A stretch of 64,000 nucleotides of DNA from Hydrolagus colliei (GCA_035084275.1 CM068778.1:1488001-1552000); one strand, 5' to 3'. Shown: positions 1,197-62,509, counted from the first letter of the stretch. The notes: generated by a model not told the origin, from the letters alone. Made by a program: numbers and translations.

Positions 1197-1764
1197 ATGA
1201 GTCTGTCGTTTCTCACTGTCTCTCTGATCTCTATCCTCTGGCCCTGTGAGTATCTCTCCACGTCTCTCAATTCCCCTCAGGCTCCCATTCCCATCATGAT
1301 TCTACATTAACACCACTGCCTGTCCGAAATAATCCCGTTGTATATGTGTATAAGTGTGAGAGTGTGGAAGTCTGTGTGTGTTTCTATGTGTATAATCCTT
1401 GAAATCCGACCAGGACTTTCACTGTGGGCAGGATGGTGAATGATGTGTTGTCGTTTCAGGCCTGTCACTGGCAGAGTTGGTGACTCAGTGGCCGAGGACA
1501 GTCACAGCCAGAGAGGGAGAGACTGTGACCTTGAGATGTTACCAGATTGAATCAGCCCTGAATACAATGCTCTGGTACCTCCAACCCCACCAGGGAGGCC
1601 TCACATTGATCGGATATAACCGTTTACCACCATCAAATTATGAGGAGGGTTTTAAATCTGGCTACAACATCACAAAGATAAGTGACAACAAGGATTCCTC
1701 CCTGGAGATCTCCATCAGCAACACAGCCCAGGAGGGGGTGTATTACTGTGCTGCTAGAGAAGGG
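1197..1764 (+). CDS. TRBV: V2: TCR beta-like V segment, intact ORF, defective heptamer
   Basis: Leader 1197-1245, V exon 1460-1764. RSS 1765-1803: CGCAGCG, 23-nt spacer, ACATAAACC. Confidence 0.85.
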
Positions 1765-2429
1765 CGCAGCGTGAGAGAGAGACAGATCTCTCATACATAA
1801 ACCTCACAAAGGATACACAACCACTCTCTTCACCACACACACAGACAGACGCACACACACAGAGACAGACACACACACACAAACCAGCCTTTCCTACACC
1901 AACACCTGTCCTCAGTCTCTGCAAAACATTACACACATCAATACAGCCGACAGTGAGACAGAGAGTGAAAAGATGAAGAGTTTAAAGTAGACACGGCTCC
2001 GTCTCGCCTACTCCCCGCACTGCACACACGATGTCTCCCCACGTCTCTCTGCGTCCTCCCACAGGCGCTCTATCAATATAATTCTGTTGTTGTGTATCTG
2101 AATCTGAGACCAATTTGGCAACCTGCTGTTCTCAGTCCATACCATTGGGGACGCTGTAGCTTCATTTAATCCACCGATTAATGCCACTGTTGCCTTTAAT
2201 CTGCCAGATATTCATTCCACAGACACAGAGAGAGGGACAGGTGGGGAGAGTGTGTGTGGGACAGTGAGTGGCAATGGTTGGATGACATGGGCAGTGCTAT
2301 CGAGTAGGAAATAGGAAGTGAGCCAGTAAGATATAAAGTGTGTATGTGAGAGAGAGAGAGAGAGAGTGTGGGAGAGATACCTGATCTTTGGTGTCAAGAT
2401 ACCAAGGTTAATCCAACGATCGGCCAACA

Positions 2430-2988
2430 ATGAGTCTGTTGTTTCCCACTGTCTCTCTGATCTCCATCCTCTGGCCCTGTGAGTATCTCTCCACATCTCC
2501 CAATTCCACCTCAGGTTCCCAACTCCACTGGGATTCTACATCTTGTCGGAACTAATCCCTCTTTTTTGTAAATCCGTGTGTGAGAGTGTGGAGTTGTGTT
2601 TGTGTGTGTGTGTGTTTAATCCCTGAAATCTGACCAGGACGTTCCCTGTGGACATGATGATGGATGTTACATTGTCTTTGCAGGTCTGTCACTGGCAGAG
2701 TTGGTGACTCAGAGGCCGAGGACAGTCGCAGCCAGAGAGGGAGAGAGAGTGACCTTGAGATGTCACCATGACAATACTAACCTTAATGCAATGCTCTGGT
2801 ACCTCCAACCCCATCAGGGAGGCCTCACATTGATCGGATATTCCTTTGCGCCAAGTCTAAATTATGAGAAGGGTTTTGAATCTGTCTACACCATTACACA
2901 GACCAGTGACTATAAGGAATCCTCCCTGAAGATCAACATCAGCAACACAACCCAGGAGGGGGTGTATTATTGCGCTGCTAGAGAAGGG
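2430..2988 (+). CDS. TRBV: V3: TCR beta-like V segment, intact ORF, 21-nt RSS spacer
   Basis: Leader 2430-2478, V exon 2684-2988. CACAGTG 2989-2995, 21-nt spacer, nonamer 3017-3025. Confidence 0.85.
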
Positions 2989-3667
2989 CACAGTGTGATA
3001 GAGACAGATCTCTCGTACATAAACCTCACACAGGGTACACAACATCTCAATTCACCAAACACACACACACACACTTACAAACACATAGATAACAAACCTT
3101 CCCCCACGAAACACCTGCCTTCAGATTCTGCCAAAAAAATTAAATATTCTACATCAACACAGCCGATTGAGAGACAGAGAATAACAGAGTTTCAGGGCCA
3201 GAGTAGACACGGCTCCATCTCACTTACTCTTCACACTGTTCCCTCTGTTTCTCTGTCTCTGAAACTGGGACTAAATTTCCAACCTACACAGTCCTCACCC
3301 GAGGGAGGCTTCAGCTTCATTGACACACCTCCCCTCCCTCTACATCTCAAACCTCCCACTAATGTCACACGGGGGAGAGGGAGAGGGGGGTGGGGGAGAG
3401 ACACTGACATCTGATGTAGTGCCTACGCTTTGTGGTCATTGGAGCATTTACTCTAGAGAACTTCATTCCACAGTGACAGAGAGACAGAGAGTGTGTGTGT
3501 GTGAGAGAGAGAATATTTGTATGACAGTACTTCCGAGAATGAAATGAGAATTGAGGATTTCAGATATAAATAGCCTGTGTGAGAGGGTGGGAGGAGGGGG
3601 TGGGTGGAGAGACAAACCTGAGCTCTGGTGTGAAGATCCCAAGATTAATCTCAAGTTTCCGCCAACA

Positions 3668-4238
3668 ATGAGTCTGTCTTTTCTCACTGTCTCTCTGATC
3701 TCCATCCTCTGGCCCTGTGAGTATCTCTCCACGTCTCTCAATTCCCCTTCAGGCTCCCATTCCCATCATGATTCTACATTACCACCACTGCCTGTCTGAA
3801 ATAATCCCGCTGTTTACGTGTATATGTGTGTGAGGGTGTGGAAGTCTGTGTGTGTTTCTATGTGTATAATCCTTGAAATCTGACCAGGACTTTCTCTGAG
3901 GGCAGGAAGGCGAATGATGTGTTGTCTTTGCAGGTCTGTCACTGGCAGAGTTGGTGACTCAGTGGCCGGGGACAGTCACAGCCAGAGAGGGAGAGACTGT
4001 GACTCTGAGGTGTTACCAAAACGAGACAACCCATCCAATAATGCTCTGGTACCTCCAACCCCATCAGGGAGGCCTCACATTGATTGGACATGGCTATGCC
4101 TCAAAACCAAATTATGAGAAAGATTTTGCATCTGTCTACACCATTATACAGACGAGTGACTATAAGGATTCCTCATTGAACATCTCTATCAGCAACACAG
4201 CCCAGGAGGGTGTGTATTACTGTGCTGCTAGAGAAGGG
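3668..4238 (+). CDS. TRBV: V4: TCR beta-like V segment
   Basis: Leader 3668-3716, V exon 3934-4238, RSS 4239-4277 (CACAGCG/23/ACATAAACC). Confidence 0.9.
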
Positions 4239-7529: not shown

Positions 7530-9084
7530 GCTGGATAGAATAATTATAACCAGAGAGGAAGTGCTAAAAAGGTTGACGTCGCTCAAGGTGGATAAGTCAC
7601 CTGGTCCGGATGGGATGCACCCTAGGTTACTAAGTGAGGCACGGGAGCAAATAGCAGGGACTCTGGCCACGATCTTTCAATCTTCCTTGGACACAGGGGT
7701 CGTGCCAGAGGACTGGAGGATAGCTAATGTTACTCCCTTGTATAAAAAGGGGCAGAAGGACAAGCCTGGTAACTACAGACCAGTCAGTCTAACGTCGGTA
7801 GTGGGCAAAATTCTAGAGTCCATAATCAGGGACAAGGTAGATCTTCACTTAGAAAGATATAGGCTAATAAAGGACAGTCAACATGGATTTGTTAAAGGCA
7901 AATCTTGCCTTACAAATCTGATAGAATTTTTTGATGAGGTAACGGAATGGGTGGATAATGGTAGCGCAGTTGATGTAGTTTACATGGACTTTCAAAAGGC
8001 ATTTGACAAAGTGCCACATGAGAGACTTATTATGAAATTAAAGGCCCATGGCGTAAAAGGGACAGTGGCAGCGTGGATCCACAACTGGCTGCGAGACAGA
8101 AAGCAGAGAGTTGTAGTGAGCGGCTGTTTTTCAGATTGGAGGGAAGTGAGCAGTGGTGCGCCACAGGGATCGGTTTTGGGACCATTGCTGTTTGTAATCT
8201 ACATCAATGATCTGGACTTGGGTGTACGGAGTACAGTTTCCAAGTTTGCAGATGACACTAAGTTAGGGAGAATAGTAAACAGTGAGGAGGATAGTAGCCA
8301 TCTGCAAGAGGATATAGACAAATTGGTAAAGTGGGCAGACACATGGCAGATGAAGTTTAATGCAGAGAAGTGTGAGGTGATGCATTTTGGGAGAAGAAAT
8401 GAAGGGAGGCAATATAGGCTAGATAGTACAATTTTAAATGGTGTGAAGGAACAGAGAGACCTGGGGATTTGTGTTAGTGACTCGTTGAAGGTGGCAGGAC
8501 AGGTAGACAAGGCTGTTAAGAAGGCATATGGGATACTAGGCTTTATAAATAGGGGTATAGAGTACAAAAGTCAGGAAGTGCTGACTAACCTCTATAGGAC
8601 TTTGGTGAGGCCTCAGCTGGAATACTGTGTTCAATTCTGGTCACCACACTACAGAAAGGATGTGAAGGCATTGGAAAGGGTACAACGAAGATTTACTAGG
8701 ATGGTGCCAGGATTGAGGGACTTCAGCTATGAGGAGAGGCTAGATAGGCTAGGGTTATTCTCTCTGGAGCAGAGAAGATTGAGGGGAGACCTAATAGAGG
8801 TTTATAAGATCATGAGGGGTTTCGACAGGGCAAATAGAGAAAAACTATTTCCACTCGTGGGTGAATCTGTGACTCGTGGTCACAGATTTAAAATAGTTTC
8901 AAGGCGCAGTAGAGGGGAGCTGAGGAGAAATTTTTTCACTCAGCGAGTTGTTCGAATCTGGAATGCATTGCCTGAAAAGGTGGTGGAGGCTGATTCGATA
9001 ACAACTTTTAAAAGGGAATTAGATCTTTATTTAGGAAGAACGGGTCTATTAGGCTATGGGGAGCGGGCAGGGCAATGGGATTGA
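7530..9084 (+). CDS. CR1 ORF2 C-terminal part (reverse transcriptase domain), uninterrupted
   Basis: ORF 7507..9084 (525 aa); the first few residues come from V7 sequence read out of frame. No stops across the RT domain. Confidence 0.85.
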
Positions 9085-9177
9085 ATCGCTCTTTTCAAAG
9101 AGCCGGCACAGACTAGATGGGCCGAATGGCCTCCTTTTGTGCCGTAAAATTCTATGATTCTATGATTCTATGATTCT
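7530..9177 (+). mobile_element. CR1-clade LINE (HER1-like), 5'-truncated, copy 1
   Basis: RT motifs QHGF, YMDFQKAFDKV, PQGSVLGP, FADD. 3' UTR ...GGGCCGAATGGCCTCC..., (ATTCTATG)n tail. Candidate TSD AATG at 7526-7529 and 9178-9181. Confidence 0.95.
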
Positions 9178-9793
9178 AATGCTCTGGTACTTCCAACTCC
9201 AAGAGGGAGGCCTCACATTGATCGGTTATTTCTATCGATCAAACCCAAATTATGAGGAGGGTTTTAAATCTGGCTACAACATCACAAAGATAAGTGACAT
9301 GAAGGATTCCTCCCTGCTGATCTCCATCAGGAACACAGCCCAGGAGGGGGTGTATTACTGTGCTGCTAGAGAAGGGCACAGTGTGAGAGAGAGACAGATC
9401 TCTCATACATAAACCTCACACAGGATACACAATGTCTCAGTTACCACACACACACACCACAATAGTCTTTCCCCCGCCAACACCTGTCATCACCTCGTCT
9501 GCTCTCCACACTTTTCTTCCTCTGTCATTGTATATCAATCTTCTAACCCATCCAGTCCATGCTCTTATAGAGAATGTAGCTTCACTAGGATGCCACCCTC
9601 CCCTCCCCACCACATCTCCTCCTCCCCCTGGAGGTGGGGGGAAGGGCCTTTCCCATGTGGTGACATATACTTTGGTGCCATTGGAGCCTTTATTCTGCCG
9701 GAGCTTCAGCCCACAGTGACAAAGACACAGAGAGTGAGAGAGAACAAGCAATTAAGTGACAGAGAAAGAGACAACGTTTGGAATGATTGGGGG

Positions 9794-9803
9794 AGTGACA
9801 TCG
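9794..9803 (+). promoter_or_regulatory. CRE-like decamer AGTGACATCG upstream of the V8 leader
   Basis: 9/10 match to the TCR Vbeta promoter decamer AGTGAYATCA, about 120 nt upstream of the ATG. Also at 24885, 46064, 52271 and 63108 (AGTGACATAG at 32329). Confidence 0.5.
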
Positions 9804-9919
9804 AGAAATAAATAGAAACAGAGAGTGAGAGAGACACAGCGCATTTGGGAGAGGGAGGGTGAGAGAAACCTTAGCTCCGGTGAAGAGTTTCCATCAGTAA
9901 TCCCAAGTCTCTGCCAAAA

Positions 9920-10509
9920 ATGTGTCTGTCCTTTCTCAATGTCTCGCTGATCTCCATCCTCTGGCCCTGTGAGTATCTCTCAACATCTGTCTATTAAGAC
10001 ATCCTCCCAATGTGAAAAGCACTATACAAATGTGTTGTTGTTACCATAAAATATTAAACCCACAGGGCTTTCATATCACTCCCCGCTCTCTCTGTATCTG
10101 AGAGGATCCCGCTTTGTGTGTGTCAATAATGCCAGGAATTCCCAACGAAAATTCATCCCAGATTCCCTCCCTGTTGGTGGGATCACATTGTTATGTTGTC
10201 TTTGCAGGTCTGTCACTGGCAGAGTTGGTGACTCAGTGGCCAGGGACAGTCACAGCCAGCGAGGGAGACACTGTGACCTTGAGATGTTACCAGAATGAGA
10301 CAACCCTTGATACAATGCTCTGGTACATCCAACCCGACCAGGGAGGCCTCACATTGATCGGATATAACCGTTTACCACCAACAACTTATGAGGAGGGTTT
10401 TAAATCTGGCTACAACATCACAAAGACAAGTGACAAGGATTCCTCCTTGGAGATCTCCATCAGCAACACAGCCCAGGAGGGGGTGTATTTCTGTGCTGCT
10501 AGAGAAGGG
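9920..10509 (+). CDS. TRBV: V8: TCR beta-like V segment
   Basis: Leader 9920-9968, V exon 10208-10509, RSS 10510-10548 (CACAGCG/23). Confidence 0.9.
9995..10042 (+). mobile_element. Short L2-clade/SINE-type 3' tail fragment in intron
   Basis: ...gtgaaaagcactatacaaatgtgttgttgtt resembles the AAAGCGCTATATAAAT + simple-repeat 3' end. Also in the V23 and V37 introns. Confidence 0.45.
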
Positions 10510-10577
10510 CACAGCGTGAGAGTGAGGCAGATCTCTCATACATAAACCTCACACAGGATACACAAACACTCTCTTCA

Positions 10578-10613
<36 letters not shown>

Positions 10614-12381: not shown

Positions 12382-12987
12382 ATGTGTCTGTCCTTTCTCA
12401 CTGTCTCTCTGATCTCCATCCTCTGGCCCTGTGAGTATCTCTCCACATCTCTCTATTACCCAGTGCATTAGATGCCCTTTTACCGACGTGAAAAGCGCTC
12501 GTCAAATATGTTGTTGTTGTTACCCACAAACTCTCAAACCCACAGGGCTTTCATATGATTCCCCTCTCTCTGTCTCTGAGATGATCCCGCTTTGCGTCCG
12601 TCCATAATGCCAGGAAATCCCCAAGAAAATACATCCCAGATTCCCTCCCTGTCAACAGGTTCACATTGTTATGTTGTCTCTGCAGGTCTGTCACTGGCAG
12701 AGTTGGTGACTCAGTGGCCGGGGACAGTTACAGCCAGAGAGGGAGAGACTGTGACCTTGAGATGTTACCAGAATGAATCAGCCCTTGAGAGAATGCTCTG
12801 GTACCTCCAACCCCACCAGGGAGGCCTCACATTAATTGGATATCTCTATTACCCACCAACAACTTATGAGGAGGGTTTTAAATCTGGCTACAACATCACA
12901 AAGACAAGTGACAAGGATTCCTCCCTGGAGATCTCCATCAGCAACACAGCCCAGGAGGGGGTGTATTACTGTGCTGCTAGAGAAGGG
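12382..12987 (+). CDS. TRBV: V10: TCR beta-like V segment (probably a chimera)
   Basis: Leader 12382-12430, V exon 12686-12987, RSS 12988-13026 (CACAGTG/23). Confidence 0.9.
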
Positions 12988-14853: not shown

Positions 14854-15462
14854 ATGTGTCTGTCCTTTCTCACTGTCTCTCTGATCTCCATCCTCTGGCC
14901 CTGTGAGTATCTCTCCACATCTCTCTATTACCCAATACATTAGATGCCCTTTTCCCGACGTGAAAAGCGCTCGTCAAATATGTTGTTGTTGTTACCCACA
15001 AACTCTCAAACCCACAGGGCTTTCATATGACTCCCCTATCTCTGTCTCTGAGATGATCCCGCTTTGTGTCCGTCCATAATGCCAGGAAATCCCCAAGAAA
15101 ATTCATCCCAGATTCCCTCCCTGTCAACAGGTTCACATTGTTATGTTGTCTTTGCAGGTCTGTCACTGGCTGAGTTGGTGACTCAGTGGCCGGGGACAGT
15201 CACAGCCAGAGAGGGAGAGACTATGACCTTGAGATGTTACCAGAACACCTCAGCCCTACAAACGATGCTCTGGTACCTCCAACCCCACCAGGGAGGCCTC
15301 ACATTGATAGGATATATCTATTACCCACCAACAATTTATGAGGAGGGTTTTAAATCTGGCTACAACATCACTAAGACAACAGACAAAAAGGATTCTTCCC
15401 TGGAGATCTCCATCAGCAACACAGCCCAGGAGGGGATGTATTACTGTGCTGCTAGAGAAGGG
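14854..15462 (+). CDS. TRBV: V12: TCR beta-like V segment
   Basis: Leader 14854-14902, V exon 15158-15462, RSS 15463-15501 (CACAGTG/23). Confidence 0.9.
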
Positions 15463-18379: not shown

Positions 18380-18930
18380 ATGAGTCTGTCCTTTCTCACT
18401 GTCGCTCTGATCTCCATCCTCTGGCCCTGTGAGTATCGCTCCACATCTCTCAATTTTCCACAGGTTCCCAAATCCCTTGGGATATCATAACATCCCCCAC
18501 TCTTTCTGAGATGATTCTACTCTGTGTCTGTGTATATGTCAGTGTGTGTGTGTGTCTTTGACCCTGTGTATCACACCAGGACACTCCCTGTGGACATGAT
18601 GATGGATGTCACATTGTCTTTGCAGGTCTGTCACTGGCAGAGTTGGTGACTCAGTGGCCGCGGACAGTCACAGCCAGAGAGGGAGAGAATGTGACTTTGG
18701 GATGTTACCAGAATGAGACAGCATATGATAGAATGCTCTGGTACCTCCAACTCCATCAGGGAGGCCTCACATTGATCGGATATGCCTTAGTGTCAAACCC
18801 AACTTATGAGAAGGGTTTTGACGCTCATTACAAAATAACACAGACTGGTGGCAACAAAGAATCCTCCCTGGAGATCTCCATCAGCAACACAGCCCAGGAG
18901 GGGGTGTATTACTGTGCTGCTAGACAAGGG
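18380..18930 (+). CDS. TRBV: V15: TCR beta-like V segment
   Basis: Leader 18380-18428, V exon 18626-18930, RSS 18931-18969 (CACAGCG/23). Confidence 0.9.
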
Positions 18931-20006
18931 CACAGCGTGAGAGAGAGACAGATCTCTCATACATAAACCTCACACAGGATACACAACCAATCTCTTCACC
19001 ACAGACACAAACCAGTCTCTTCCCCCAACCAACACCTGCTCTCACTTTGTCAAAAACTAAAAACATCAACACAGATGATTGAGAGACAGAGAGAATTAGA
19101 GGTTCAGGGACAGTGTAGACATGGCTCCATCTCACCTTCTCTCCACACTGTTCCCTCTGTCTCTGTTTCTGAAACGTGGACAAATTTTATGACCAACTGT
19201 TACCTTTCTATACCGTGGGGGAGGCTGTATCTTCACTAAAACACCATCTCCCCAACCCCACATCTGCACCTCCCACCAATGTCCCACAGGGGGGCGGGGG
19301 AGAGGCACATTTCCTATCTGGTGTCGATACTTGGTATCATTCATGGCTCTATTCTGCCAGTGCTTCATGAGATATAGAGAGAGATTGTGTGTGTGTGTGA
19401 GAGAGAGACAGCGAGAATGGTAGAGAGAGACCAAGCAAGACAGCATTTCTGAGAGAAGAGAGTGAAGTTAAGAAAGTTAAATATAATACTCTCTGCACTA
19501 TCTGTGTCTCTCACTCTCTGGGTCCTTCCGATGTTGTGTCCTCCCAAGATGCTCTATAAATATCATTTTGTTGTTGTGGTTAAGTCTCTGAATTTTAGAC
19601 CAATTTGGCCACCTGCTGTTCTCAGTCCATACCATTGGGGACGCTGCAGCTTCACTAAGTCACCCCCCCATCCCCCACATATACCTCCCACCAATGTGAC
19701 ACTGCGAGGGTGGGGTGAGGGGCAGGATTCCCACATCTGATGTTCTGCAGACGCTTCAGTGCCATTGTTGCCTTTACTCTGCCAGAGCTTCATTCCACGG
19801 ACGCAGATAGAGAGGGGGCCTGTGGGGAGAGGGTTTGTGTGAGACAGTGAGAGGCAGTGTTGGCGTGACAGGGGGCAGTTCTTTCAATTAGGAAATAGGA
19901 AATGAGCCAGTGAGATATAAAGTGTGGAGGCGAGAGAGACATTGTGGGAGAGATCGCTGAGCTCTGGTGTGAAGATCTCCAGGTGAATCTCAAATCTCCG
20001 CCAACA

Positions 20007-32454: not shown

Positions 32455-33042
32455 ATGTGTCTGTCCTTTCTCAATGTCTCGCTGATCTCCATCCTCTGGC
32501 CCTGTGAGTATCTCTCAACATCTCTCTATTAAGACGTCCTCCCAATGTGAAAAGCACTATACAAATGTGTTATTGTTACCATAAAATATTAAACCCACAT
32601 GGCTTTCATATCCCTGCCCGCTCTCTGTATCTGAGAGGATCCCGCTTTCTGTGTGTCCATAATGCCAGGAATTCCCAACGAAAATTCATCCCAGATTCCC
32701 TCCCTGTTGGCGGGATCACATTGTTATGTTGTCTTTGCAGGTCTGTCACTCGCAGAGTTGGTGACTCAGTGGCCGGGGACAGTCACAGCCAGAGAGGGAG
32801 AGACTGTGACATTGAGATGTTACCAGAATGAGACAACCCTTGATACCATGCTCTGGTACCTCCAACCCCACCAGGGAGGCCTCACATTGATCGGATATAA
32901 CCGTTTACCACCAACAACCTATGAGGAGGGTTTTAAATCTGGCTACAACATCACAAAGACAAGTGACAAGGATTCCTCCCTGGAGATCTCCATCAGCAAC
33001 ACAGCCCAGGAGGGGGTGTATTACTGTGCTGCTAGAGAAGGG
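32455..33042 (+). CDS. TRBV: V23: TCR beta-like V segment
   Basis: Leader 32455-32503, V exon 32741-33042, RSS 33043-33081 (CACAGCG/23). Confidence 0.9.
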
Positions 33043-36190: not shown

Positions 36191-36818
36191 ATGAGTCTGT
36201 CCTTTCTCACTGTCTCTCTGATCTCCATCCTCTGGCCCTGTGAGTATCTCTTCACATCTCCCAATTCTCCACAGGTTCCCAAATGCCTTGGGATATCATA
36301 CGATCCTCATGTCTGAGATGAACCTAATCTGTGTCTGTGTATATGTCAATCAAAATCAATCAATCAAAACCTACATTTATATTGCACCTTTCACGTCAAG
36401 AGGGTGTCCCAGTGTATGTGTGTTTGTGTCTGTGTGTGTGTGTCTGTGATCCCAGGAATCAGACCAGGACATTCCCTGTGGGCAGGATGATGGATGTTAC
36501 ATTGTCTTTGCAGGTCTGTCCCTGGCAAAGTTGGTGACTCAGAGGCCGGGGACAGTCACAGCCAGAGAGGGAGAGACTGTGACTTTCAGGTGTCACCACG
36601 ATGATACGAACCTGTTTACAATGCTCTGGTACCTCCAACTCCATCAGGGAGGCCTCACATTGATTGGATATATCACTGATTCAAAGCCAAAGAACGAGAT
36701 AGAATTTATATCTGGCTATAACATTACACAGACTGATGAGAACAAGAAGTCCTCCCTGGAGATCTCCATCAGGAACACAGCCCAGGAGGGGGTGTATTAC
36801 TGTGCTGCTAGACAAGGG
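36191..36818 (+). CDS. TRBV: V26: TCR beta-like V segment
   Basis: Leader 36191-36239, V exon 36514-36818, RSS 36819-36857 (CACAGTG/23). Confidence 0.9.
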
Positions 36819-37357: not shown

Positions 37358-37966
37358 ATGTGTCTGTCCTTTCTCACTGTCTCTCTGATCTCCATCCTCT
37401 GGCCCTGTGAGTATCTCTCCACATGTCTCTATTACCCAGTGCATTAGATTCCCTTTTGCCGACGTGAAAAGCGCTCGTCAAATATGTTGTTGTTGTTACA
37501 CACAAACTCTCAAACTCACAGGGCTTTCATATGACTCCCCTATCTCTGTCTCTGAGATGATCCCGCTTTGCGTCCGTCCATAATGCCAGGAAATCCCCAA
37601 GAAAATTCATCCCAGATTCCCTCCCTGTCAACAGGTTCACATTGTTATGTTGTCTTTGCAGGTCTGTCACTGGCTGAGTTGGTGACTCAGTGGCCGGGGA
37701 CAGTCACAGCCAGAGAGGGAGAGACTGTGACCTTGAGATGTTACCAGAACACCTCAGCCCTACAAACGATGCTCTGGTACCTCCAACCCCACCAGGGAGG
37801 CCTCACATTGATAGGATATCTCTATTACCCACCAACAATTTATGAGGAGGGTTTTAAATCTGGCTACAACATCACAAAGACAACAGACAAAAAGGATTCT
37901 TCCCTGGAGATCTCCATCAGCAACACAGCCCAGGAGGGGGTGTATTACTGTGCTGCTAGACAAGGG
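37358..37966 (+). CDS. TRBV: V27: TCR beta-like V segment
   Basis: Leader 37358-37406, V exon 37662-37966, RSS 37967-38005 (CACAGTG/23). Confidence 0.9.
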
Positions 37967-43724: not shown

Positions 43725-44283
43725 ATGATTCTGCCCTTTCTCACTGTCTCTCTGATCTCCATCCTCTGGCCATGTGAGTATCTCTCCACATCTCTCAATT
43801 GCCCTCAGGCTCCCAATTCCTACTGGGATTCTACGTCACCACCATTGCCTGAGCTAAATAATCACACTGTGTGTGAGATCGTGTGTTTTGGTGTGTGTGA
43901 GTGTATGTGTGTGATCCCGGGAATCAGACCAGACCATTCCCTGTGGACAGGATGGAGAATGTTATTTTGTGTTTGCAGGTCTGTCAGTGGGAGCCTTGAT
44001 GACTCAGTGGCCGGGGACAGTCACAGCCAGAGAGGGAGAGACTGTGACTTTGAGATGTTACCAGAATGACACAACCCATAATACAATGCTCTGGTACCTC
44101 CAACCCCATCATGGAGGCCTCATATTGATCGGGTATTTTTTTCGGTCAAAACCAAATTATGAGAAGGGTTTTCAATCTGACTACAACATCACAAAGACAA
44201 GTGACGACATGGATTCCTCCCTGGAGATCTCCATCAGCAACACAGCCCAGGAGGGGGTGTATTACTGTGCTGCTAGAGAAGGG
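43725..44283 (+). CDS. TRBV: V32: TCR beta-like V segment
   Basis: Leader 43725-43773, V exon 43979-44283, RSS 44284-44322 (CACAGCG/23). Confidence 0.9.
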
Positions 44284-50699: not shown

Positions 50700-51310
50700 C
50701 ACAGCGTGAGAGAGAGGCAGATCTCTCATACATAAACCTCACACAGGGTACACAACGTTTCTGTTTACCACACACAGACACAGACACACGAACCAGCCTT
50801 TCCCCCCACCAACACCTGTCCTCAGCTTCCACAAAAGTTAAACACATCGAACAGACGTTTGAGAGACGACAGAGCGAAAAAGAGATTCAGGACCAGACGA
50901 GACAAGGCACTGTCTCTCCAACTCTCCACACTCTTCCCTCTGTGTCTCTGTCTCTGAATCTAAGACCAATTTTGTAACTCAGTGTTCTCAGTCCATACCC
51001 TGGTGGGCGCTGTAACATCACTAAGACACCAACTCCCCTCCCACTACAGCTCCACCTCCCCCCCCCCACCCCCCCCAATCAGCCTTTCTGATGTGGTGTC
51101 TACACTTTGGTGTCATTGGAGCCTTTAGTACATAGTGACAGGGAGAGAGATTGAGCGACAAAGAGAGAAACAACTTTTGGATAATTGGGGGCGTGCTATC
51201 GAGAAATAAATAGAAACAGAGCCTGAGAGAAATAAGGGGCATATGTAAGAGGGAGAGAAACCTTAGCTCCAGTGTAGGGTATTCAAGATTATTCCAAGTC
51301 TCTGCCAACA

Positions 51311-51848
51311 ATGATTCTGTCCTTTCTCACAGTCTCTCTAATATCCATCCTTTGGCCCTGTGAGTATCTCCCGACATATCTCGCTATCCCACAAGCTCTC
51401 ATATCCATAGGATTTCATATCACATCCACCTCTCAGTCTGAGATGATTCCAATTTAAGTCTGTCCCTGATCCCGGGAACCCCTCCGGGACATTCAGCCCA
51501 GATTCCCTGTCGGTGGGATCACTTTGTTATATTGTCTTTGCAGGTCTGTCACTGGCAGAGTTGGTGACTCAGTGGCCGGGGACAGTCACAGCCAGAGAGG
51601 GAGAGACTGTGACCTTGAGATGTTACCAGAACACCTCAGCCCTACAAACGATGCTCTGGTACCTCCAACCCCACCAGGGAGGCCTCACATTGATCGGATA
51701 TGCCTTTATCTCAAACCCAACTTATGAGGAGGGTTTTAAATCTGGCTACAACATCACACAGACTGGTGGCAACAAGGATTCCTCCCTGGAGATCTCCATC
51801 AGCAACACAGCCCAGGAGGGGGTGTATTACTGTGCTGCTAGACAAGGG
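51311..51848 (+). CDS. TRBV: V36: TCR beta-like V segment (mosaic)
   Basis: Leader 51311-51359, V exon 51544-51848, RSS 51849-51887 (CACAGCG/23). Confidence 0.9.
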
Positions 51849-52396
51849 CACAGCGTGAGAGAGACACAGATCTCTCATACATAAACCTCACACAGGATAC
51901 ACAATGACTCTCTTCACCACACACACACACACACCACAATAAGTCTTTCCCCCGCCAACACCTGTCATCACCTCGTCTACTCTCCACACTTTTCGTCCTC
52001 TGTCATTGTATATCAATCTTCTAACCCATCCAGTCCATGCTCTTATAGAGAATGTAGCTTCACTAGGATGCCACCCTCCCCTCCCCACCCCATCTCCTCC
52101 TCCCCCTGGGGGTGGGGGGAGGGCCTTTCCCATGTGGTGACATATACTTTGGTGCCATTGGAGCCTTTATTCTGCCGGAGCTTCAGCCCACAGTGACAAA
52201 GACACAGAGAGTGAGAGAGAACAAGAGATTAAGTGACAGAGAAAGAGACAACGTTTGGAATGATTGGGGGAGTGACATCGTGAAATAAATAGAAACAGAG
52301 AGTGAGAGAGACAAAGCACATTTGGGAGAGGGAGGGTGAGAGAAACCTTAGCTCCAGTGAAGAGTTTCCATCAGTAATCCCAAGTCTCTGCCAACA

Positions 52397-52986: not shown

Positions 52987-53664
52987 CACAGCGTGAGAGA
53001 GAGACAGATCTCTCATACATAAACCTCACACAGGGTACACAAACACTCTCTTCACCACACACACACACACACACTCACGGATACACACAAACCAGCCTTT
53101 CCCACCATCAACACCTGTGCTCACATTGTCAAGAAATTAACATCAACACAGACGATTGAGAGACAGAGAGGAAAAGAGAGTAGACATGGCTCCATCTCGC
53201 CTCCTCTCCACACTGTTCCCTCTGTCTCTGTTTCTGAATCATTGACATATTTTTTGACTTACTGTTCGCAGTTCATACCCTGGGGGAGGATGCAGGTTCA
53301 CGAACGCACCTCCCCTCACCCAAATCTGCACCTCCCACCAATGTCCCACAGGGGGGCAGGGGAGAGGCACATTTTCAATGTGGTGTCGACACTTTGGTGT
53401 CATTGATGGCTTTATTCTTTCTGTGCTTCATTCCACAGAGATACAAGAGAGATCGTTTGTGTGTGTGTGCATCAGACAGCGAGAGTGTGAGAGAGAGAGA
53501 CCGAGCTAGACGACATTTTTGAGAGAAGAGAGTGAAGTTAAGAAAGTAAAATACAAAGACAGAGTGTGGGCGATAAGGAAAGAGCATATGTAGGAGACAA
53601 GAAGGGAGAGAAACCTGAGCTCTTGTGTGAAGATCCCAAAGTTAATCTCAAGTCTCTGCCAACA

Positions 53665-54303
53665 ATGAGTCTGTCTATTCTCACTGTCTCTCTGATCTCC
53701 ATCCTCTGGCCCTGTGAGTATCTCTTCACATCTCCCAATTCTCCACAGGTTCCCAAATGCCTTGGGATATCATGCGATCCTCCACTTTTCATGTCTGAAA
53801 TGAACCTAATCTGTGTCTGTGGAAAGTCAATCCAAATCAATCAATCAATCAAAACTTACATTTATATAGCGCCTTTCACGTCAGGAGGGTGTCCCAGTGT
53901 ATGTGTGTTTGTGTCTGTGTGTGTGTGTCTGTGATCCCGGGAATCAGACCAGGACATTCTCTGAGGGCAGGATGATGGATGTTACATTGTCTTTGCAGGT
54001 CTGTCCCTGGCAAAGTTGGTGACTCAGAGGCCGGGGACAGTCACAGCCAGAAAGGGAGAGACTGTGACTTTCAGGTGTCACCACGATGATACGAACCTGT
54101 TTACAATGCTCTGGTACCTCCAACTCCATCAGGGAGGCCTCACATTGATTGGATATATCCGTGATTCAAACCCGAAGAATGAGATAGAATTTATATCTGG
54201 CTATAACATTACACAGACTGATGAAAACAAGAAGTCCTCCCTGGAGATCTCCATCAGGAACACAGCCCAGGAGGGGGTGTATTACTGCGCTGCTAGACAA
54301 GGG
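53665..54303 (+). CDS. TRBV: V38: TCR beta-like V segment
   Basis: Leader 53665-53713, V exon 53999-54303, RSS 54304-54342 (CACAGTG/23). Confidence 0.9.
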
Positions 54304-54833
54304 CACAGTGTGAGAGAGAGACAGATCTCTCATACATAAACCTCACACAGGGTACACAAACATTCGCTTCACCACACACACACAGACACACACAACAACC
54401 AGACTTTCCCCAGCCAACACCTGCCCTCACCTCGCCTACTCTCCACACTGTGTCTCTGTATCCGAATCTACCACCAATTTTGAAAGCCACCCAGTCCAGC
54501 CTCTTATAGAGAGTGTAGCTTCACTGAGACACTCCCTACCACAGCCCCACCTCGCCCTGAGGATGGGGGGAAGGGCCTTTCAGATGTGGAGGCGACACAT
54601 TGGTGCCTGTATTTTGCCAGAGCTTCAGCCCACAATGACACAGTGAGAGAGGGAGAGAGACAGAGGTTAAGTGACGGGGAAAGATACAACCTTCGGGTAA
54701 TTGGGGGAGAACTATCGAGCAATACACAGAAACAGAGAGTGAGAGAGACAACGAATATTTGTGAGGGGAAGAGTGATAGAAACATCAGATAGAGTGTAGA
54801 TTATCCCAGTGTAATCCCAAATCTCAGACAACA

Positions 54834-55442
54834 ATGTGTCTGTCCTTTCTCACTGTCTCTCTGATCTCCATCCTCTGGCCCTGTGAGTATCTCTCCACAT
54901 GTCTCTATTACCCAGTGCATTAGATGCCCTTTTACCGACGTGAAAAGCGCTCGTTAAATATGTTGTTGTTGTTACCCGCAAACTCTCAAACCCACAGGGC
55001 TTTCATATGACTCCCCTCTCTCTGTCTCTGAGATGATCCCGCTTTGCGTCCGTCCATAATGCCAGGAAATCCCCAAGAAAATACATCCCAGATTCCCTCC
55101 CTGTCAACAGGTTCACATTGTTATGTTGTCTCTGCAGGTCTGTCACTGGCTGAGTTGGTGACTCAGTGGCCGGGGACAGTCACAGCCAGAGAGGGAGAGA
55201 CTGTGACCTTGAGATGTTACCAGAATGAATCAGCCCTTGATAGAATGCTCTGGTACCTCCAACCCCACCAGGGAGGCCTCACATTGATAGGATATATCTA
55301 TTACCCACCAACAAATTATGAGGAGGGTTTTAAATCTGGCTACAACATCACAAAGACAACAGACAAAAAGGATTCTTCCCTGGAGATCTCCATCAGCAAC
55401 ACAGCCCAGGAGGGGATGTATTACTGTGCTGCTAGACAAGGG
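54834..55442 (+). CDS. TRBV: V39: TCR beta-like V segment
   Basis: Leader 54834-54882, V exon 55138-55442, RSS 55443-55481 (CACAGTG/23). Confidence 0.9.
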
Positions 55443-55969
55443 CACAGTGTGAGAGAGAGACAGATCTCTCATACATAAACCTCACACAGGATATACAACG
55501 TTTCTGTTCACCACACACACACAATTCATGTTTTTCCCCCCCATCAACACCTGCCCTCAGTCTTCGCCAAATTCAAGCACATCAACACACACGATTGAGA
55601 GACAAGGGAGAACAAGAGGCTGTAGCTTAACTGAGACACCTCTCCTTCCTCCATATCTCAAGCCTCTCACTGGAGAGGCGATGCAGTCACTTCCGAAGTG
55701 ATGCCAACACTTTATGTGATTGGTGGCTATACCCTGCCAGATGTTCATTCCACAGAGTCAAAGAGAGAGAGAGGAGTCTGTGTGTGTGTGTAAGAGGGCG
55801 AGTGTCTGAGCGAGATAGAGCTCGGCAAACTTTGCAAAGAGCAGAGTCAAGTTCAGAAAGCTAAATACAAACACAGAGTGTGGAAGATAAGAAAGAGTGT
55901 ATGTGAGAGAGAAGGGGAAAACACAAGATCTGTGAAGATCCCAAATTTAATCTCAAGTCTCCACCAACG

Positions 55970-56533
55970 ATGAGACTGTCCTTTCCCGTTGTCTCTCTGA
56001 TTCCCATCCTCTGGCCCTGTGAGTATCTCTCCACATCTCTCAATTCCCCCTCAGGCTCCCAATTCCACTAAGATTTTGTAACATCCCCCATTCTCTCTGT
56101 CTGAGATGGTCCCAATCTTTGTTTGTGTGTACATGACTGTGTGTTTACGGGATTATGTGTTTAATCCCTGGAGTCAGACCAGCACATTCCCTGTGGACAT
56201 GATGATGGATGTAATATTGTCTTTGCAGGTCTGTCACTGGCAGAGTTGGTGACTCAGTGGCCCGGGACAGTCACAGCAAAAGAGGGAGAGACAGTGATTT
56301 TGAAATGCTACCAGAATAATACAGCCCTCGGTACAATGCTCTGGTACCTCCAACCCCATCTGGGAGGCCTCAAATTAATTGGATATAGCCTTACTACAAG
56401 CCCAAATTATGAGAAAGATTTTCCAGCTGGCTTCAAAATCACAAAGACAAGTGACGACAAGGATTCCTCCCTGGAGATCTCCATCAGCAACACAACCCAG
56501 GAGGGGGTGTATTACTGTGCTGCTAGAGAAGGG
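55970..56533 (+). CDS. TRBV: V40: TCR beta-like V segment, intact ORF, defective heptamer
   Basis: Leader 55970-56018, V exon 56229-56533. RSS 56534-56572: CGCAGCG/23/ACATAAACC. Confidence 0.85.
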
Positions 56534-57138
56534 CGCAGCGTGTGAGAGAGACAGATCTCTCATACATAAACCTCACACAGGGTACACAACCACTCTCTTC
56601 ACCACAAACACAAACCAGTCTCTTCCCCCAACCAACACCTGCTCTCACTTTGTCAAAAACTAAAGACATCACCACAGACGATTGAGAGACAGAGAGAAAA
56701 AGAGGTTCAGGGACAGTGTAGACATGGCTCCATCTCACCTTCTCTCCACACTGTTCCCTCTGTCTCTGTTTCTCAAACATGGACCAATTTTGTGACCAAC
56801 TGTTACCAGTCTATACCGTGGGGGAGGCTGTAGCTTCACTAAAACACCATCTCCCCAACCCCACATCTGCACCTCCCACCAATGTCCCACAGGGGGGCGG
56901 GGGAGAGGCACATTTCCTATCTGATGTCGATACTTGGTATCATTCATGGCTCTATTCTGCCAGTGCTTCATGAGATATAGAGAGAGATTGTTTGTGTGTC
57001 CGTGTGTAGTGCGACATTAAGAAGTGGCGTATGAATGTAAGAGAGAGAGAAAGAGAGAGAGAGAGGTGACAACCTGAGCTCTGGTGTGTGAATCGCAAGT
57101 GAAGAGTTGCCATCAGTAATCCCAAGTCTCTGCCAACA

Positions 57139-57697
57139 ATGAGTCTGTCCTTTCTCACTGTCTCTCTGATCTCCATCCTCTGGCCATGTGAGTATCTCTC
57201 CACATCTCTCAATTGCCCTCAGGCTCCCAATTCCGACTGGGATTCTACGTCACCACCATTGCCTGAGCTAAATAATCACACTGTGTGTGAGATCGTGTGT
57301 GTTGGTGTGTGTGAGTGTATGTGTGTGTTCCCGGGAATCAGACCAGACCATTCCCTGTGGACAGGATGGAGAATGTTATTTTGTTTTTGCAGGTCTGCCA
57401 GTGGGAGCCTTGATGACTCAGTGGCCGGGGACAGTCACAGCCAGAGAGGGAGAGACTGTGACTTTGAGATGTTACCAGAACGACACAACCCATAGTACAA
57501 TGCTCTGGTACCTCCAAACCCATCAGGGAGGCCTCACATTGATCGGATATGCCGTACTGGCAAACCCAAATTATGAGAAGGGTTTTGATACTGATTACAA
57601 AATTACACAGATTGGTGGCAACAAGGAATCCTCCCTGGAGATCTCCATCAGCAACACTACCCAGGAGGGGGTGTATTACTGTGCTGCTAGAGAAGGG
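57139..57697 (+). CDS. TRBV: V41: TCR beta-like V segment (mosaic CDR1)
   Basis: Leader 57139-57187, V exon 57393-57697, RSS 57698-57736 (CACAGCG/23). Confidence 0.9.
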
Positions 57698-58364
57698 CAC
57701 AGCGTGAGAGAGAGGCAGATCTCTCATACATAAACCTCACACAGGATACACAATGTCTCAGTTTACCACACACACACAGAGACACACACACAAACCAGCC
57801 TTTTCCCCCACCAACACCTGCTCTCACTTTGCCAAAAATTAAAGACATCAACGTAGACGATTGAGAGACAGAGAGAAAAAGAGGTTCAGGGACACAGGAC
57901 AGAAGGTGACATGATTCCATCTCACCTTCTCTCCATACTGTTCCCTCTGTCTCTGTAACTTTGACCAATTTTGTGACTGACTGTTACCAGTCTATACCCA
58001 GGGGGAGGCTGTAGCTTCACTAAAACACCACCTCCCCTCCCCCACATCTGAACCTCCCATTAATGTCCTATAGGTGGGCGGGGGAGGAGGCACATTTCCC
58101 AATTGGTGCCGTCACTTTTGTGTCATTGATGGCTTTATTCTGCCAGTGCTTTATTCCAAAGTGATGCAGATAGATAGTGTGTGTGTGTATGAGAGAGCGA
58201 GAGTCAAAGAAACCGAGCTAGACAACGTTTATGAGAGTAGGGAGTGCAGTTAGGAAAGTTACATACAAACACAGAGTGTGGGCGATAAGGAAAGAGAGAA
58301 GAAGGGAGAGAAACCTGAGCTCTAATGTGAAGATCCCAAGATTAATCTCAAGTCTCCACCAACG

Positions 58365-58914
58365 ATGAGTCTGTCCTTTCTCACTGTCGCTCTGATCTCC
58401 ATCCTCTGGCCCTGTGAGTATCGCTCCACATCTCTCAATTTTCCACAGGTTCCCAAATCCCTTGGGATATCCCAACATCCCCACTCTTTCTGAGATGATC
58501 CTACTCTGTGTCTGTGTATATGTCAGTGTGTGTGTGTGTCTTTGACCCTGTGTATCACACCAGGACACTCCCTGTGGACATGATGATGGATGTTACATTG
58601 TCTTTGCAGGTTTGTCACTGGCAGAGTTGGTGACTCAGTGGCCGCGGACAGTCACAGCCAGAGAGGGAGATAATGTGATTTTGGGATGTTACCAGAATGA
58701 GACAGCATATGAAAGAATGCTCTGGTACCTCCAACTCCATCAGGGAGGCCTCACATTGATCGGATATGCCTTCGTGTCAAACCCAACTTATGAGAAGGGT
58801 TTTGACGCTCATTACAAAATTACGCAGACTGGTGGCAACAAAGAATCCTCCCTGGAGATCTCCATCAGCAACACAGACCACGAGGGGGTGTATTACTGTG
58901 CTGCTAGACAAGGG
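58365..58914 (+). CDS. TRBV: V42: TCR beta-like V segment
   Basis: Leader 58365-58413, V exon 58610-58914, RSS 58915-58953 (CACAGCG/23). Confidence 0.9.
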
Positions 58915-59639
58915 CACAGCGTGAGAGAGAGACAGATCTCTCATACATAAACCTCACACAGGATACACAACTACTCTCTTCACCACAGACTCTTCCCCAA
59001 CCAACACCTGCTCTCACTTTGTCAAAAACTAAAGACATCAACACAGGCGATTGAGAGACAGAGAGAATAAGAGGTTCAGGGACAGTGTAGACATGGCTCC
59101 ATCTCACCTTCTCTCCACACTGTTCCCTCTGTCTCTGTTTCTGAAAAGTGGACCAATTTTGTGACCAACTGTTACCTGTCTATACCGTGGGGGAGGCTGT
59201 AGCTTCACTAAAACATCATCTCCCCAACCACACATCTGCACCTCCCACCAATGTCCCACAGGGGGGCGGGGGAGAGGCACATTTCCTATCTGGTGTCGAT
59301 ACTTGGTATTATTCATGGCTCTATTCTGCCAGTGCTTCATGAGATATAGAGATTGTGTGTGTGTGTGAGAGAGACAGCGAGAGACGCTTCAGTGCCATTG
59401 TTGCCTTTACTCTGCCAGAGCTTCATTCCATGTCCGCAGATAGAGAGGGGGGCTGTGGGGAGAGGGTTTGTGTGAGACAGTGAGAGGCAGCGTTGGCGTG
59501 ACAGGGGGCAGTTGTTTCAATTAGGAAATAGGAACTGAGCCAGTGATATATAAAGTGTGGAGGTGAGAGAGACATTGTGGGAGAGATCGCTGAGCTCTGG
59601 TGTGAAGATCTCCAGGTGAATCTCAAATCTCCGCCAACA

Positions 59640-60185
59640 ATGAGTCTGGCCTTTCTTGCTGTCTCTCTGACCTCCATCCTCTGGCCCTGTGAGTATCTCT
59701 CATCATTTTACTTTTTCCCTCAAACTCTCAAATCCATTTGGATTTCATATCACACCCCTCTCCTCTTGTCCGACATTATACCACATTTCTGTGTATAGGT
59801 TTGGAAACCCAGCATCTCTCCCAGGACATTCAGCCCAGATTCCCTGTCGGTGGGATCACATTGTTATGTTGTCTTTGCAGGTCTGTCACTGGCATAGTTG
59901 GTGACTCAGAGGCCGGGGACAGTCACAGCCACAGAGGGAGAGACTGTGACATTGACATGTCAGCACAATAATGCTGACCTTAATACAATGCTCTGGTACC
60001 TCCAACTCCATCAGGGAGGCCTCACATTAATGGGATACAGCAGGTACACAAAGCCAGAGTATGAGAAGGGATTTGAATCTGGCTACAGCTTTACACAGTC
60101 TAGTGACTACAAGAACTCCTCCCTGGAGATCTCCATTAGCAACACAACCCAGGAGGGGGTGTATTACTGTGCTGCTAGAGAAGGG
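59640..60185 (+). CDS. TRBV: V43: TCR beta-like V segment
   Basis: Leader 59640-59688, V exon 59881-60185, RSS 60186-60224 (CACAGTG/23). Confidence 0.9.
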
Positions 60186-60869
60186 CACAGTGTGAGAGAG
60201 AGACAGATCTCTCATACATAAACCTCACACAGGATATACAACGTTTCTGTTCACCACACACAAACTCCATGTGTTCCCCCCCACCAACACCTGCCCTCAG
60301 TCTTGGCCAAAAATCAAACATGACAACACAGACGATTGAGAGACAAGAGAGAAAAAGAGGTTCGGGGTCCAGAGAGGACAATAATAACAACAAAATTACA
60401 TTTGTGTAGCGCCTTTCAAGTCAGGAGGTCATCCCACGGCAATGGACAGTTACAGCTTCAGGATATGGCTCCATCTCGACTACTCTCCAAACTCTTCTCT
60501 CTGTGTCTCTTGTGACCAACTGTTCCCAATCCACACCCTGGGAGAGGATGTAGCTGTAGGGGGGGAGAGGATGTTTCTGGGGGGGAGACAGCTGGCCAAC
60601 TTCCGATCTGGTGCCGACACTGAATGCCATTGGTGCCTTTACTCTGCCAGAGATTCATTCCTCAGAGACACAGAGAGAGAATGAAATAGCGAGACAAACT
60701 TTGGGAGACAGGTCGCGTGTTATCCGGATAGATAGAACGTTAGTGCGACATTAAGAAGTGGCGTATGACTGTGAGAGAGAGAGTAAAATAGAGAGAAAAA
60801 GTGAGAGAGAGGGGACAACGTGAGCTCTGGTGTGAGAATCGCAAGGTTAATCTCAAATCTCTGCCAACA

Positions 60870-61436
60870 ATGATTCTGTCCTTTCTCACTGTCTCTCTGA
60901 TTTCCATCCTCTGGCCATGTGAGTATCTCTCCACATCTCTCAATTGCCCTCAGGCTCCCAATTCCCACTGGGATTCTACGTCACCACCATTGCCTGTCCG
61001 ACATAATCCCGCTGTGTGTGAGAGTGTGGAGTCGTGTGTATTGGTGTGTGTGAGTGTATGTGTGTGATCCCGGGAATCAGACCAGACCATTCCCTGTGGA
61101 CAGGATGGACAATGTTATTTTGTGTTTGCAGGTCTGTCAGTGGGAGCCTTGATGACTCAGTGGCCGGGGACAGTCACAGCCAGAGAGGGAGAGACTGTGA
61201 CCTTGAGATGTTACCAGAACGACACAACCCATAATACAATGCTCTGGTACCTCCAACCCCATCATGGAGGCCTCACATTGATCGGGTATTTTTTTCGGTC
61301 AAAACCAAATTATGAGAAGGGTTTTCAATCTGGCTACAACATCACAAAGACAAGTGACGACAAGGATTCCTCCATGGAGATCTCCATCAGCAACACAGCC
61401 CAAGAGGGGGTGTATTACTGTGCTGCTAGAGAAGGG
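60870..61436 (+). CDS. TRBV: V44: TCR beta-like V segment, variant heptamer
   Basis: Leader 60870-60918, V exon 61132-61436, RSS 61437-61475 (CACAGCA/23/ACATAAACC). Confidence 0.88.
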
Positions 61437-62052
61437 CACAGCATTAGAGAGAGACAGATCTCTCATACATAAACCTCACACAGGATACACAACCAATCTC
61501 TTCACCACAGACACAAACCAGTCTCTTCCTCAACCAACACCTGCTCTCACTTTGTCAAAAACTAAAAACATCAACCCAGATGATTGAGAGACAGAGAGAA
61601 TAAGAGGTTCAGGGACAGTATAGACATAGCTCCATCTCACCTTCTCTCCACACTGATCCCTCTGTCTCTGTTTCTGAAACGTGGACAAATTTTATGACCA
61701 ACTGTTACCTGTCTATAGCGTGGGGGAGGCTGTAGCTTCACTAAAACACCATCTCCCCAACCCCACATCTGCACCTCCCACCAATGTCCCACAGGGGGGG
61801 CGGGGGAGAGGCACATTTCCTATCTGGTGTCGATACTTGATATCATTCATGGCTCTATTCTGCCAGTGCTTCATTGCACAGAGATATAGAGAGAGATTGT
61901 GTGTGTGTGCGTGTGTAGTGCGACATTAAGAAGTATGAATGTGAGAGAGACAGTAAAAGAGAGAGAAAGAGAGAGAGAGGTGACAACGTGAGCTCTGGTG
62001 TGTGAATCGCAAGTGAAGAGTTGCCATCAGTAATCCCAAGTCTCTGCCAACA

Positions 62053-62509
62053 ATGAGTCTGTCCTTTCTCACTGTCTCTCTGATCTCCATCCTCTGGCCA
62101 TGTGAGTATCTCTCCACATCTCTCAATTGCCCTCAGGCTCCCAATTCCCACAGAACAGACCATTCCCTGTGGACAGGATGGACAATGTTATTTTGTGTTC
62201 GCAGGTCTGCCAGTGGGAGCCTTGATGACTCAGTGGCCGGGGACAGTCACAGCCAGAGAGGGAGAGACTGTGACTTTGAGATGTTACCAGAACGACACAA
62301 CCCATAGTATAATGCTCTGGTACCTCCAACCCCATCAGGGAGGCCTCACATTGATCGGATATTTCTATGTGTCAAATCCAAATTATGAGAAGGGTTTTGA
62401 TACTCACTACAAACTTATACAGATTGGTGGGAACAAGGATTGCTCCCTGGAGATCTCCATCAGCAACACTACCCAGGAAGGGGTGTATTACTGTGCTGCT
62501 AGAGAAGGG
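62053..62509 (+). CDS. TRBV: V45: TCR beta-like V segment with a shortened intron
   Basis: Leader 62053-62101, 103-nt intron, V exon 62205-62509, RSS 62510-62548 (CACAGCG/23). Confidence 0.9.

Follow-up and report, generated by a model that had tools for sequence, protein, structure and literature searches.

Mosaic V segments in a TCR-beta-like germline array of Hydrolagus colliei: probable short-tract gene conversion beside unequal crossover

How does a tandem array of V gene segments with near-invariant frameworks come to carry the same loops in different combinations? The question is raised by a stretch of 64,000 nucleotides (nt) from Hydrolagus colliei (GCA_035084275.1 CM068778.1:1488001-1552000), here called the window, in whose positions all coordinates are given. 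It contains a dense array of ∼46 T-cell receptor (TCR)-beta-like V gene segments in tandem. An earlier sequence-only reading, whose numbering (V1-V46 style) was matched to the window coordinates and is used throughout, held that complementarity-determining regions (CDRs) 1 and 2 and hypervariable region 4 (HV4) are exchangeable patches, shuffled by ectopic gene conversion with the frameworks as homology arms. The near-invariance of the frameworks is borne out. So is ectopic conversion with endpoints in the frameworks, through tracts with two breakpoints, donor-type copies and the co-transfer of silent sites. Taken as a whole, the array probably evolves by non-allelic homologous recombination, in which short-tract ectopic gene conversion acts together with unequal crossover. 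Three recent block copies, A, B and C (Table 1), make it possible to count individual events, to measure their size and, for some, to read the direction.

Segment V36 carries two foreign patches on a V22-type backbone. Over the 1.25-kb unit, its differences from V22 are scattered except for two clusters, in CDR1 and HV4: 12 over 365 nt of 5′ flank, three in the leader and two in the intron, against 10 in CDR1 and eight in HV4. Three of the 10 CDR1 differences are purely synonymous (Asn, Leu and Thr codons at 51632, 51644 and 51650), and a 21-mer singled out in the sequence-only reading occurs exactly three times (V12, V27 and V36), with none expected. In a 3SEQ-type exact test on whole units, V36 as a mosaic of V22 and V27 has p = 4e-11, which survives correction for 59,280 triples; as a mosaic of V22 and V15, on account of HV4, it has p = 3.8e-9 (2e-4 corrected for the same 59,280 triples). 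In HV4, the core is identical to that of V15, but the full 25 nt are not. The composite described earlier for V36, with its V22-type background, V12/V27-identical CDR1 and V15-type HV4, is thus found at the nucleotide level as two bounded patches; the exchange is present, but the direction of transfer then implied is ambiguous. Between V12 and V27 themselves, 21 mismatches are found in 1.25 kb. V39, the block-C counterpart of V12, has a CDR1 of V10/V25 type instead. V12 is a significant mosaic of V10 and V36 (corrected p 1.7e-5, 3SEQ-type), and the CDR1 of V22 is one nucleotide from that of V35. V12/V27 may be the recipients of a V36-type CDR1, and the CDR1 of V22 may itself be converted; the block copies fix no direction for V36/V22 or for V12/V27 with respect to V39. 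V6/V7 was considered as a block-A outgroup for the direction between V22 and V36 and was rejected, since painting with a copying model shows the V7 exon to be V18/V2-like and only its 3′ flank to be V22/V36-like.

The motif NRLPP, noted earlier as common to V2 and V8/V23, also corresponds to a shared tract at the nucleotide level. This tract (58-71 nt) covers the end of framework region (FR) 2 and CDR2, includes two silent FR2 sites, and is embedded in a V37-type unit; its two carriers, V8 and V23, are not identical to one another. V37 has a 5′ flank of V8/V23 type, with an FR2 end and CDR2 of V10 type, so that the pattern once described as a V8/V23 background with a V10-type CDR2 is real, but its direction is possibly the reverse. 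The 3′ half of V10 has its origin in a V8/V37-type gene, so that the CDR2 common to V37 and V10 may be ancestral, and V8/V23 may be the recipients of a V2-type tract. Whichever direction is chosen among those considered (for V37/V8/V23, V12/V27 and V22/V36), exchange is required.

For two events, in V26 and V32, direction is settled by outgroup copies. In the region of the V26 CDR2 tract, a single nucleotide separates V11 (block A) from V38 (block C), and both have the same state, which is not that of V24; V26 is therefore the recipient. The formal test is weak here, the V24 and V26 families being nearly identical elsewhere. In the intron of V32, V17 (block A) and V44 (block C) likewise share the other state, which identifies the V32 patch as a non-coding conversion of known direction. 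Two further tracts lie in 3′ flanks. V15 and V32, which are non-orthologous and 25 kb apart, share a mostly non-coding tract of at least 327 nt, over which V15 shows 17 differences from its own ortholog V30 (17/327). Similarly, the 3′ flank of V25 has four differences in 409 nt from V23 vs 14 in 409 from its ortholog V10. The tracts in the V32 intron and in the 3′ flanks of V15/V32 and V25/V23 show that exchange is not confined to loops, and the notion of loops as special targets is not upheld. Recipient-type sequence is found on both sides of the tracts in V36 (two), V8/V23, V26, V32 and V25. These short double-breakpoint tracts have minimum lengths of 10-86 nt and maximum lengths of 23-201 nt, and most have an identical copy elsewhere in the array, the HV4 patch of V36 being an exception. 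Exact matching copies exist for V36 CDR1, V8/V23 CDR2, V26 CDR2, the V32 intron, V20 HV4 and V41 CDR1. From V8/V23 to V18/V33, every gene of block A has its partner in the same order in block B, and copy number is unchanged at the conversion sites there.

Table 1. Blocks, mosaic tracts and breakpoint intervals, in window positions (RSS, recombination signal sequence; p, 3SEQ-type test on whole units)
Feature	Position	Strand	Description
Block A	9171-23300	+	V7 3′ flank to V18; 96.5% identical to block B
Block B	31705-45774	+	96.5% identical to block A
Block C	~50379-64000 (window end)	+	94-96% identical to A and B
V2 FR2-CDR2, partner copy	1569..1626	+	Matches the V8/V23 tract
V8 FR2-CDR2 tract, V2 type (NRLPP)	10317..10374	+	58 nt, maximum 71 nt; p = 2e-11
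V23 FR2-CDR2 tract, V2 type	32850..32907	+	No mismatch to V2; p = 9e-11
V10 breakpoint interval	12792..12834	+	5′ V12/V39-type, 3′ V8/V37-type; p ~1e-55
V12 CDR1	15246..15264	+	19-nt state as in V36
V15 FR3-RSS-3′ flank tract	18862..19188	+	2/327 differences from V32 (44215-44541); p = 3e-12
V26 CDR2 tract	36675..36695	+	Identical to neighbouring V24 (34222-34242)
V27 CDR1	37750..37768	+	19-nt state as in V36 and V12
V32 intron patch, V14/V29/V41 type	43823..43875	+	53-99 nt; donor-type copy near 39752-39804; p = 2e-6 nominal
V35 breakpoint region	50700..50760	+	Left V20-type, right V21-type 3′ flank; p ~1e-57
V36 gene	51311..51887	+	Leader ATG to RSS nonamer; V22-type backbone, two foreign patches; V exon from 51546
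V36 CDR1 patch	Minimum 51632..51650, maximum 51558-51694	+	10 differences from V22 in 19 nt; identical to V12/V27
V36 HV4 patch	Minimum 51757..51773, maximum 51753-51775	+	Identical to V15 over 20 nt
V39 switch interval	55244..55286	+	V10/V25-type through CDR1, V12/V27-type from CDR2 on
V41 CDR1	57488..57497	+	Four changes relative to V14/V29 within 10 nt, each as in V45 (62300-62309)

Mosaic structure also emerges from tests over the whole array. The copying model has a far lower cost on the real alignment than on column-shuffled ones (exon, z = −10; leader plus intron, z = −18), and in eight recombination-free simulations, based on the maximum-likelihood (ML) tree of the exon and real per-site rates, z ranged from −2.0 to +2.1 vs −9.3 for the real exon. 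From leader to RSS, 24 of the 40 genes are Bonferroni-significant mosaics in the 3SEQ-type scan; with the exon alone, 59 triples are significant, vs none in six simulations. The incongruence among separate trees for which the sequence-only reading proposed a test is found as well: approximately unbiased (AU) tests reject the ML tree of each partition (5′ region, exon 5′ half, exon 3′ half, 3′ flank, loops and frameworks) on the data of every other. Trees of short partitions are noisy, and the rejections of the well-resolved 5′-region tree weigh most.

Comparison of the blocks indicates where differences accumulate. Between A and B, divergence is 3.8% in loops, 2.4% in frameworks and 2.9% in non-coding DNA; between B and C, the corresponding values are 8.8, 2.0 and 4.3%. 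The excess in B-C loops is concentrated in a minority of cases, 11 of the 33 loop comparisons, each with 4-10 differences, holding 67 of the 87 loop differences. Loop differences are thus over-dispersed, with 0-2 in most loops and 4-10 in a few. Synonymous divergence between B and C reaches 0.122 in loops and 0.037 in frameworks, for a non-coding divergence of 0.042. Amino-acid selection does not account for this synonymous excess; tract transfer can. The proportion of nonsynonymous differences (pN) is 0.079 in B-C loops vs 0.014 in frameworks. Between subfamilies (all V exons), synonymous divergence amounts to 0.14 in frameworks and 0.36 in loops, with 0.34 in introns. The low framework value points to homogenisation of, or constraint on, the DNA sequence of the frameworks, and loops seem to keep the age of their subfamily. 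Loop types are mostly linked to backbones, with 0-1 incompatibility cycles per partition pair under coarse clustering; shuffling is occasional, not free, and to call CDR1, CDR2 and HV4 freely exchangeable patches is too strong.

Nor are all mosaics due to loop conversion, as had been supposed: several (V35, V10/V25 and probably V39) are crossover hybrids with a change in copy number. V35 and V10/V25 are single-breakpoint hybrids of unequal crossover. V35 is V20-like through its exon, and block C has no separate counterpart of V21; V25 is the block-B copy of the hybrid V10. V39 is probably also an unequal-crossover hybrid and fits a deletion-type crossover in block C, which has one 2.46-kb two-gene unit fewer than A and B. 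The 5′ regions of the V10, V12 and V39 types are mutually 1.7-3.2% apart. An old duplication of 2.46 kb followed by loss in block C, prompted by the 91% identity of the 2.46-kb repeats, was rejected, as region-wise distances give no order of events. Duplication extends to the segment 24592-29796, which is 97.2% identical to 45770-50975. A 3′-flank type common to alternate genes is seen in V13, V15, V17 and their block-B/C copies (e.g. 16600-16900, 18970-19280 and 21860-22160). Such alternation hints that the present blocks overlie an older repeat unit of two genes.

A mechanism that would combine both processes can be outlined. Unequal crossovers would duplicate or delete units, leave single-breakpoint hybrids behind, and would have made the three blocks of 14-22 kb. 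Ectopic conversion, presumably through heteroduplex repair in the germline, would write tens to a few hundred bases of one V unit into another and leave copy number unchanged. Between subfamilies, only the exons would pair, frameworks being >90% identical and introns and flanks largely unalignable. With pairing so limited, endpoints would fall in the frameworks, and the visible change would be a swapped CDR1, CDR2 or HV4. Introns and flanks, too, would be rewritten in this way where the units are closely related. The picture of frameworks as homology arms is therefore mechanistically reasonable, but the apparent specificity for loops would largely reflect where exchange is possible and detectable. 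The gain in repertoire diversity that the sequence-only reading drew from the exchange is a putative one.

Could unequal crossover alone, with retention of ancestral loops, have produced the array without any gene conversion? V35, V10/V25 and V39 do fit single breakpoints with copy-number change, block boundaries lie at V genes, and the V10-type CDR2 of V37 can be ancestral, given that the 3′ half of V10 comes from a V8/V37-type gene. Such a history is nevertheless very improbable, if the assembly is correct, in view of the two V36 patches, each of which is enclosed by V22-type sequence, of the V2-type tract of 58-71 nt inside the V37-type unit of V8/V23, and of the V32 intron patch and V26 CDR2 tract, both derived within orthologous units where gene number is unchanged. 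A technical origin has also been weighed, in which assembly or polishing blended reads of different V paralogs into one consensus and so created false short patches. Polishing with short reads is known to carry the sequence of a paralog into near-identical flanks, repetition in the array is high, and the analysis is built on the assembly alone. However, the main patch states are found again in copies that have diverged independently (V12/V27, with their 21 mismatches per 1.25 kb, and V8/V23), paralogs differ by at least 3% and are resolvable by modern long reads, and N runs are absent from the window, all of which makes an artefact highly improbable as a general explanation.

Point substitution is the other way in which loops may become alike, by convergence under diversifying selection. 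It draws on the excess of nonsynonymous change in the B-C loops, on A-B loops being only mildly more diverged than non-coding DNA, and on loop differences that are nonsynonymous only in V41, V31/V43, V33/V45 and V18/V33. For V41, it remains a rival. The earlier description of this gene, a V14/V29 background with the CDR1 QNDTTHS, is correct, but all four CDR1 differences are nonsynonymous and the nominal p of 0.006-0.04 is not significant once corrected, so that conversion is a possible origin of this loop. As a cause of the whole pattern, convergence is very improbable: the patch common to V36, V12 and V27 shares 10 of 10 states, three of them purely silent; the V2-type tract of V8/V23 has its two silent FR2 sites; synonymous divergence in loops is 3 times that of frameworks or non-coding DNA; and selection on amino acids cannot yield tracts in introns and flanks. 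Silent sites travel with the best-supported tracts, and loops shared without silent changes, which the sequence-only reading regarded as fatal to its proposal, are not what these tracts display.

Recombination by both crossover and conversion, as preferred here, has several observations against it. No exact donor is found in the array for CDR1 and CDR2 of V31/V43, nor for the HV4 state of V22. The loops of V41 (V29/V41), V31/V43 and V33/V45, with nonsynonymous changes only, also fit positively selected point mutations. The HV4 tract of V36 is at most 23 nt long relative to V15, which is short for conversion, and its true donor may lie outside the window. Both this tract and the V41 CDR1 occur in one copy only and could be polishing artefacts. 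Within the exon, the pairwise homoplasy index (PHI) is not significant (z −0.3 and +2.6), incompatibility showing no decay with distance inside 346 nt; PHI gains significance only when the whole span from leader to RSS is used (z −5 to −7), which is not taken as support for exchange within the exon. Finally, a longest-run test of the Sawyer/GENECONV style is uninformative, its top fragments all being located in conserved FR3/RSS, where they reflect constraint or homogenisation and not specific events.

V40 was also examined as evidence of shuffling and rejected. It differs from V28 by 2 nt (FPAG vs FQSG) and from V13 by 1 nt, a CpG in the heptamer, with no mosaic signal. The letters once cited, FPAGFK shared with V13 and a CGC heptamer shared with V28, are right but trivial, V40 being an ordinary ortholog with point differences.

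A further proposal goes beyond mechanism. Loop-sized conversion could be a selected and systematic diversifier of the germline in holocephalan TCR-beta V arrays, but this is unlikely. Under this proposal, the same exchange would keep frameworks homogeneous, silent sites included, and would so provide standing homology arms, and selection would keep those tracts that create new combinations of CDR1, CDR2 and HV4. If true, it would be a counterpart, over evolutionary time, of the pseudo-V conversion of chicken, in one of the oldest jawed-vertebrate lineages. In chicken and rabbit immunoglobulin (Ig) genes, conversion is somatic, templated by pseudo-V donors, AID-dependent, and acts on the rearranged V. 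By analogy, V copies of the present array would also donate short CDR-changing tracts, with frameworks as the homology. The differences seen here, however, are inherited in the germline, lie between functional-looking segments, and are read from a germline assembly.

Conversion between V genes in the germline has been on record since the 1980s, when it was proposed and documented, as in the T15 heavy-chain V (VH) family of mouse (PMC2187977; Baltimore 1981 concept cited there). As in that family, short segments appear to be exchanged among closely related germline V segments (PMC2187977). The present array differs in being TCR-beta-like, holocephalan and, with a spacing of 1.2 kb, much denser, and in its three recent blocks, which allow some directions to be read. 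Mammalian TRBV genes evolve mainly by birth and death, with gene conversion documented but minor in the bovine TRB locus (PMC2685407), and conversion of TRBV genes is acknowledged beside this dominant model (PMC2685407; 10.1101/2024.09.05.611428). The bovine locus resembles the present one in its expansion by duplicated multi-gene homology units and in conversion among TRBV genes (PMC2685407). In the holocephalan array, by contrast, conversion is visible and not marginal, 67 of 87 B-C loop differences falling in clustered tracts. A literature search on holocephalan TCR-beta loci found no specific work. The window is thus a clear and unusually resolvable new holocephalan example of a known process, without a new mechanism. 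It supplies concrete events with which to weigh conversion, crossover and point mutation in the germline TCR repertoire of an early-branching vertebrate.

The assignment of the array is based on several matches. The V domain matches Pfam V-set PF07686 (E = 8e-14), and the best PDB matches include TCR beta V chains, Ig heavy-chain V domains scoring close behind. The nearest database proteins are V domains of Callorhinchus milii (60-78% identity). Several C. milii V genes (among them those of proteins P0011 and P0012) have exactly the leader peptide MSLSFLTVSLISILWP (in the window e.g. 51311-51359) and FR2 sequence MLWYLQPHQGGLTLIGY of the array, and the CDR2 AVLSNP recurs in V genes of that species, from which some loop types may be very old. 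As part of the explanation preferred here, the segments are in good probability germline TCR-beta-like V segments of a holocephalan fish.

In general, the units share one layout: a leader exon, which in most is 49 nt long and makes 16 complete codons, an intron of ∼190 nt, the V exon and the RSS. The window holds 48 V-exon matches, all on the + strand and spaced by ∼1.1-1.3 kb. There are 40 full-length units, as many as the 40 intact V exons counted in the sequence-only reading, but V domains are open in 39 of them by motif scan and in-frame translation, and the Cys...Trp...Tyr-x-Cys motif scan also recovers 39 units. The sole full-length unit with a broken frame is V43, owing to an in-frame stop in FR1 (LSLA*LV, 59883-59900). 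The RSS consists of a heptamer CACAGCG or CACAGTG, a 23-nt spacer and the nonamer ACATAAACC. Among the 38 RSSs recognised by pattern scan, 36 have the 23-nt spacer, and CACAGCG, rather than the canonical CACAGTG, is present in 25 of the 38 heptamers. The automatic scan returned spacers of 21 instead of 23 nt for V3 (∼2990) and V24 (∼34370), and no RSS match for V30 and V44. In V2 (∼1766), V28 (∼39050) and V40 (∼56535), segments otherwise intact, the heptamer reads CGCAGCG instead of starting with CAC; a CGC start is expected to impair cleavage by RAG.

Some V exons are interrupted by retrotransposons without long terminal repeats (non-LTR). One, on the − strand (25496-28220), interrupts V19 at about exon position 175 and has endonuclease-like and reverse-transcriptase open reading frames of 423 and 377 amino acids. 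The same insertion is seen in V34 (46675-49393) and apparently in V46 (after 63715). The other is a 5′-truncated copy of 1.65 kb (7532-9174), in the opposite orientation, which splits V6/V7 at about exon position 100 and ends in a (ATTCTATG)n tail. The V19-type and V6/V7 insertions look like two independent hits of long interspersed nuclear elements (LINEs) in V exons.

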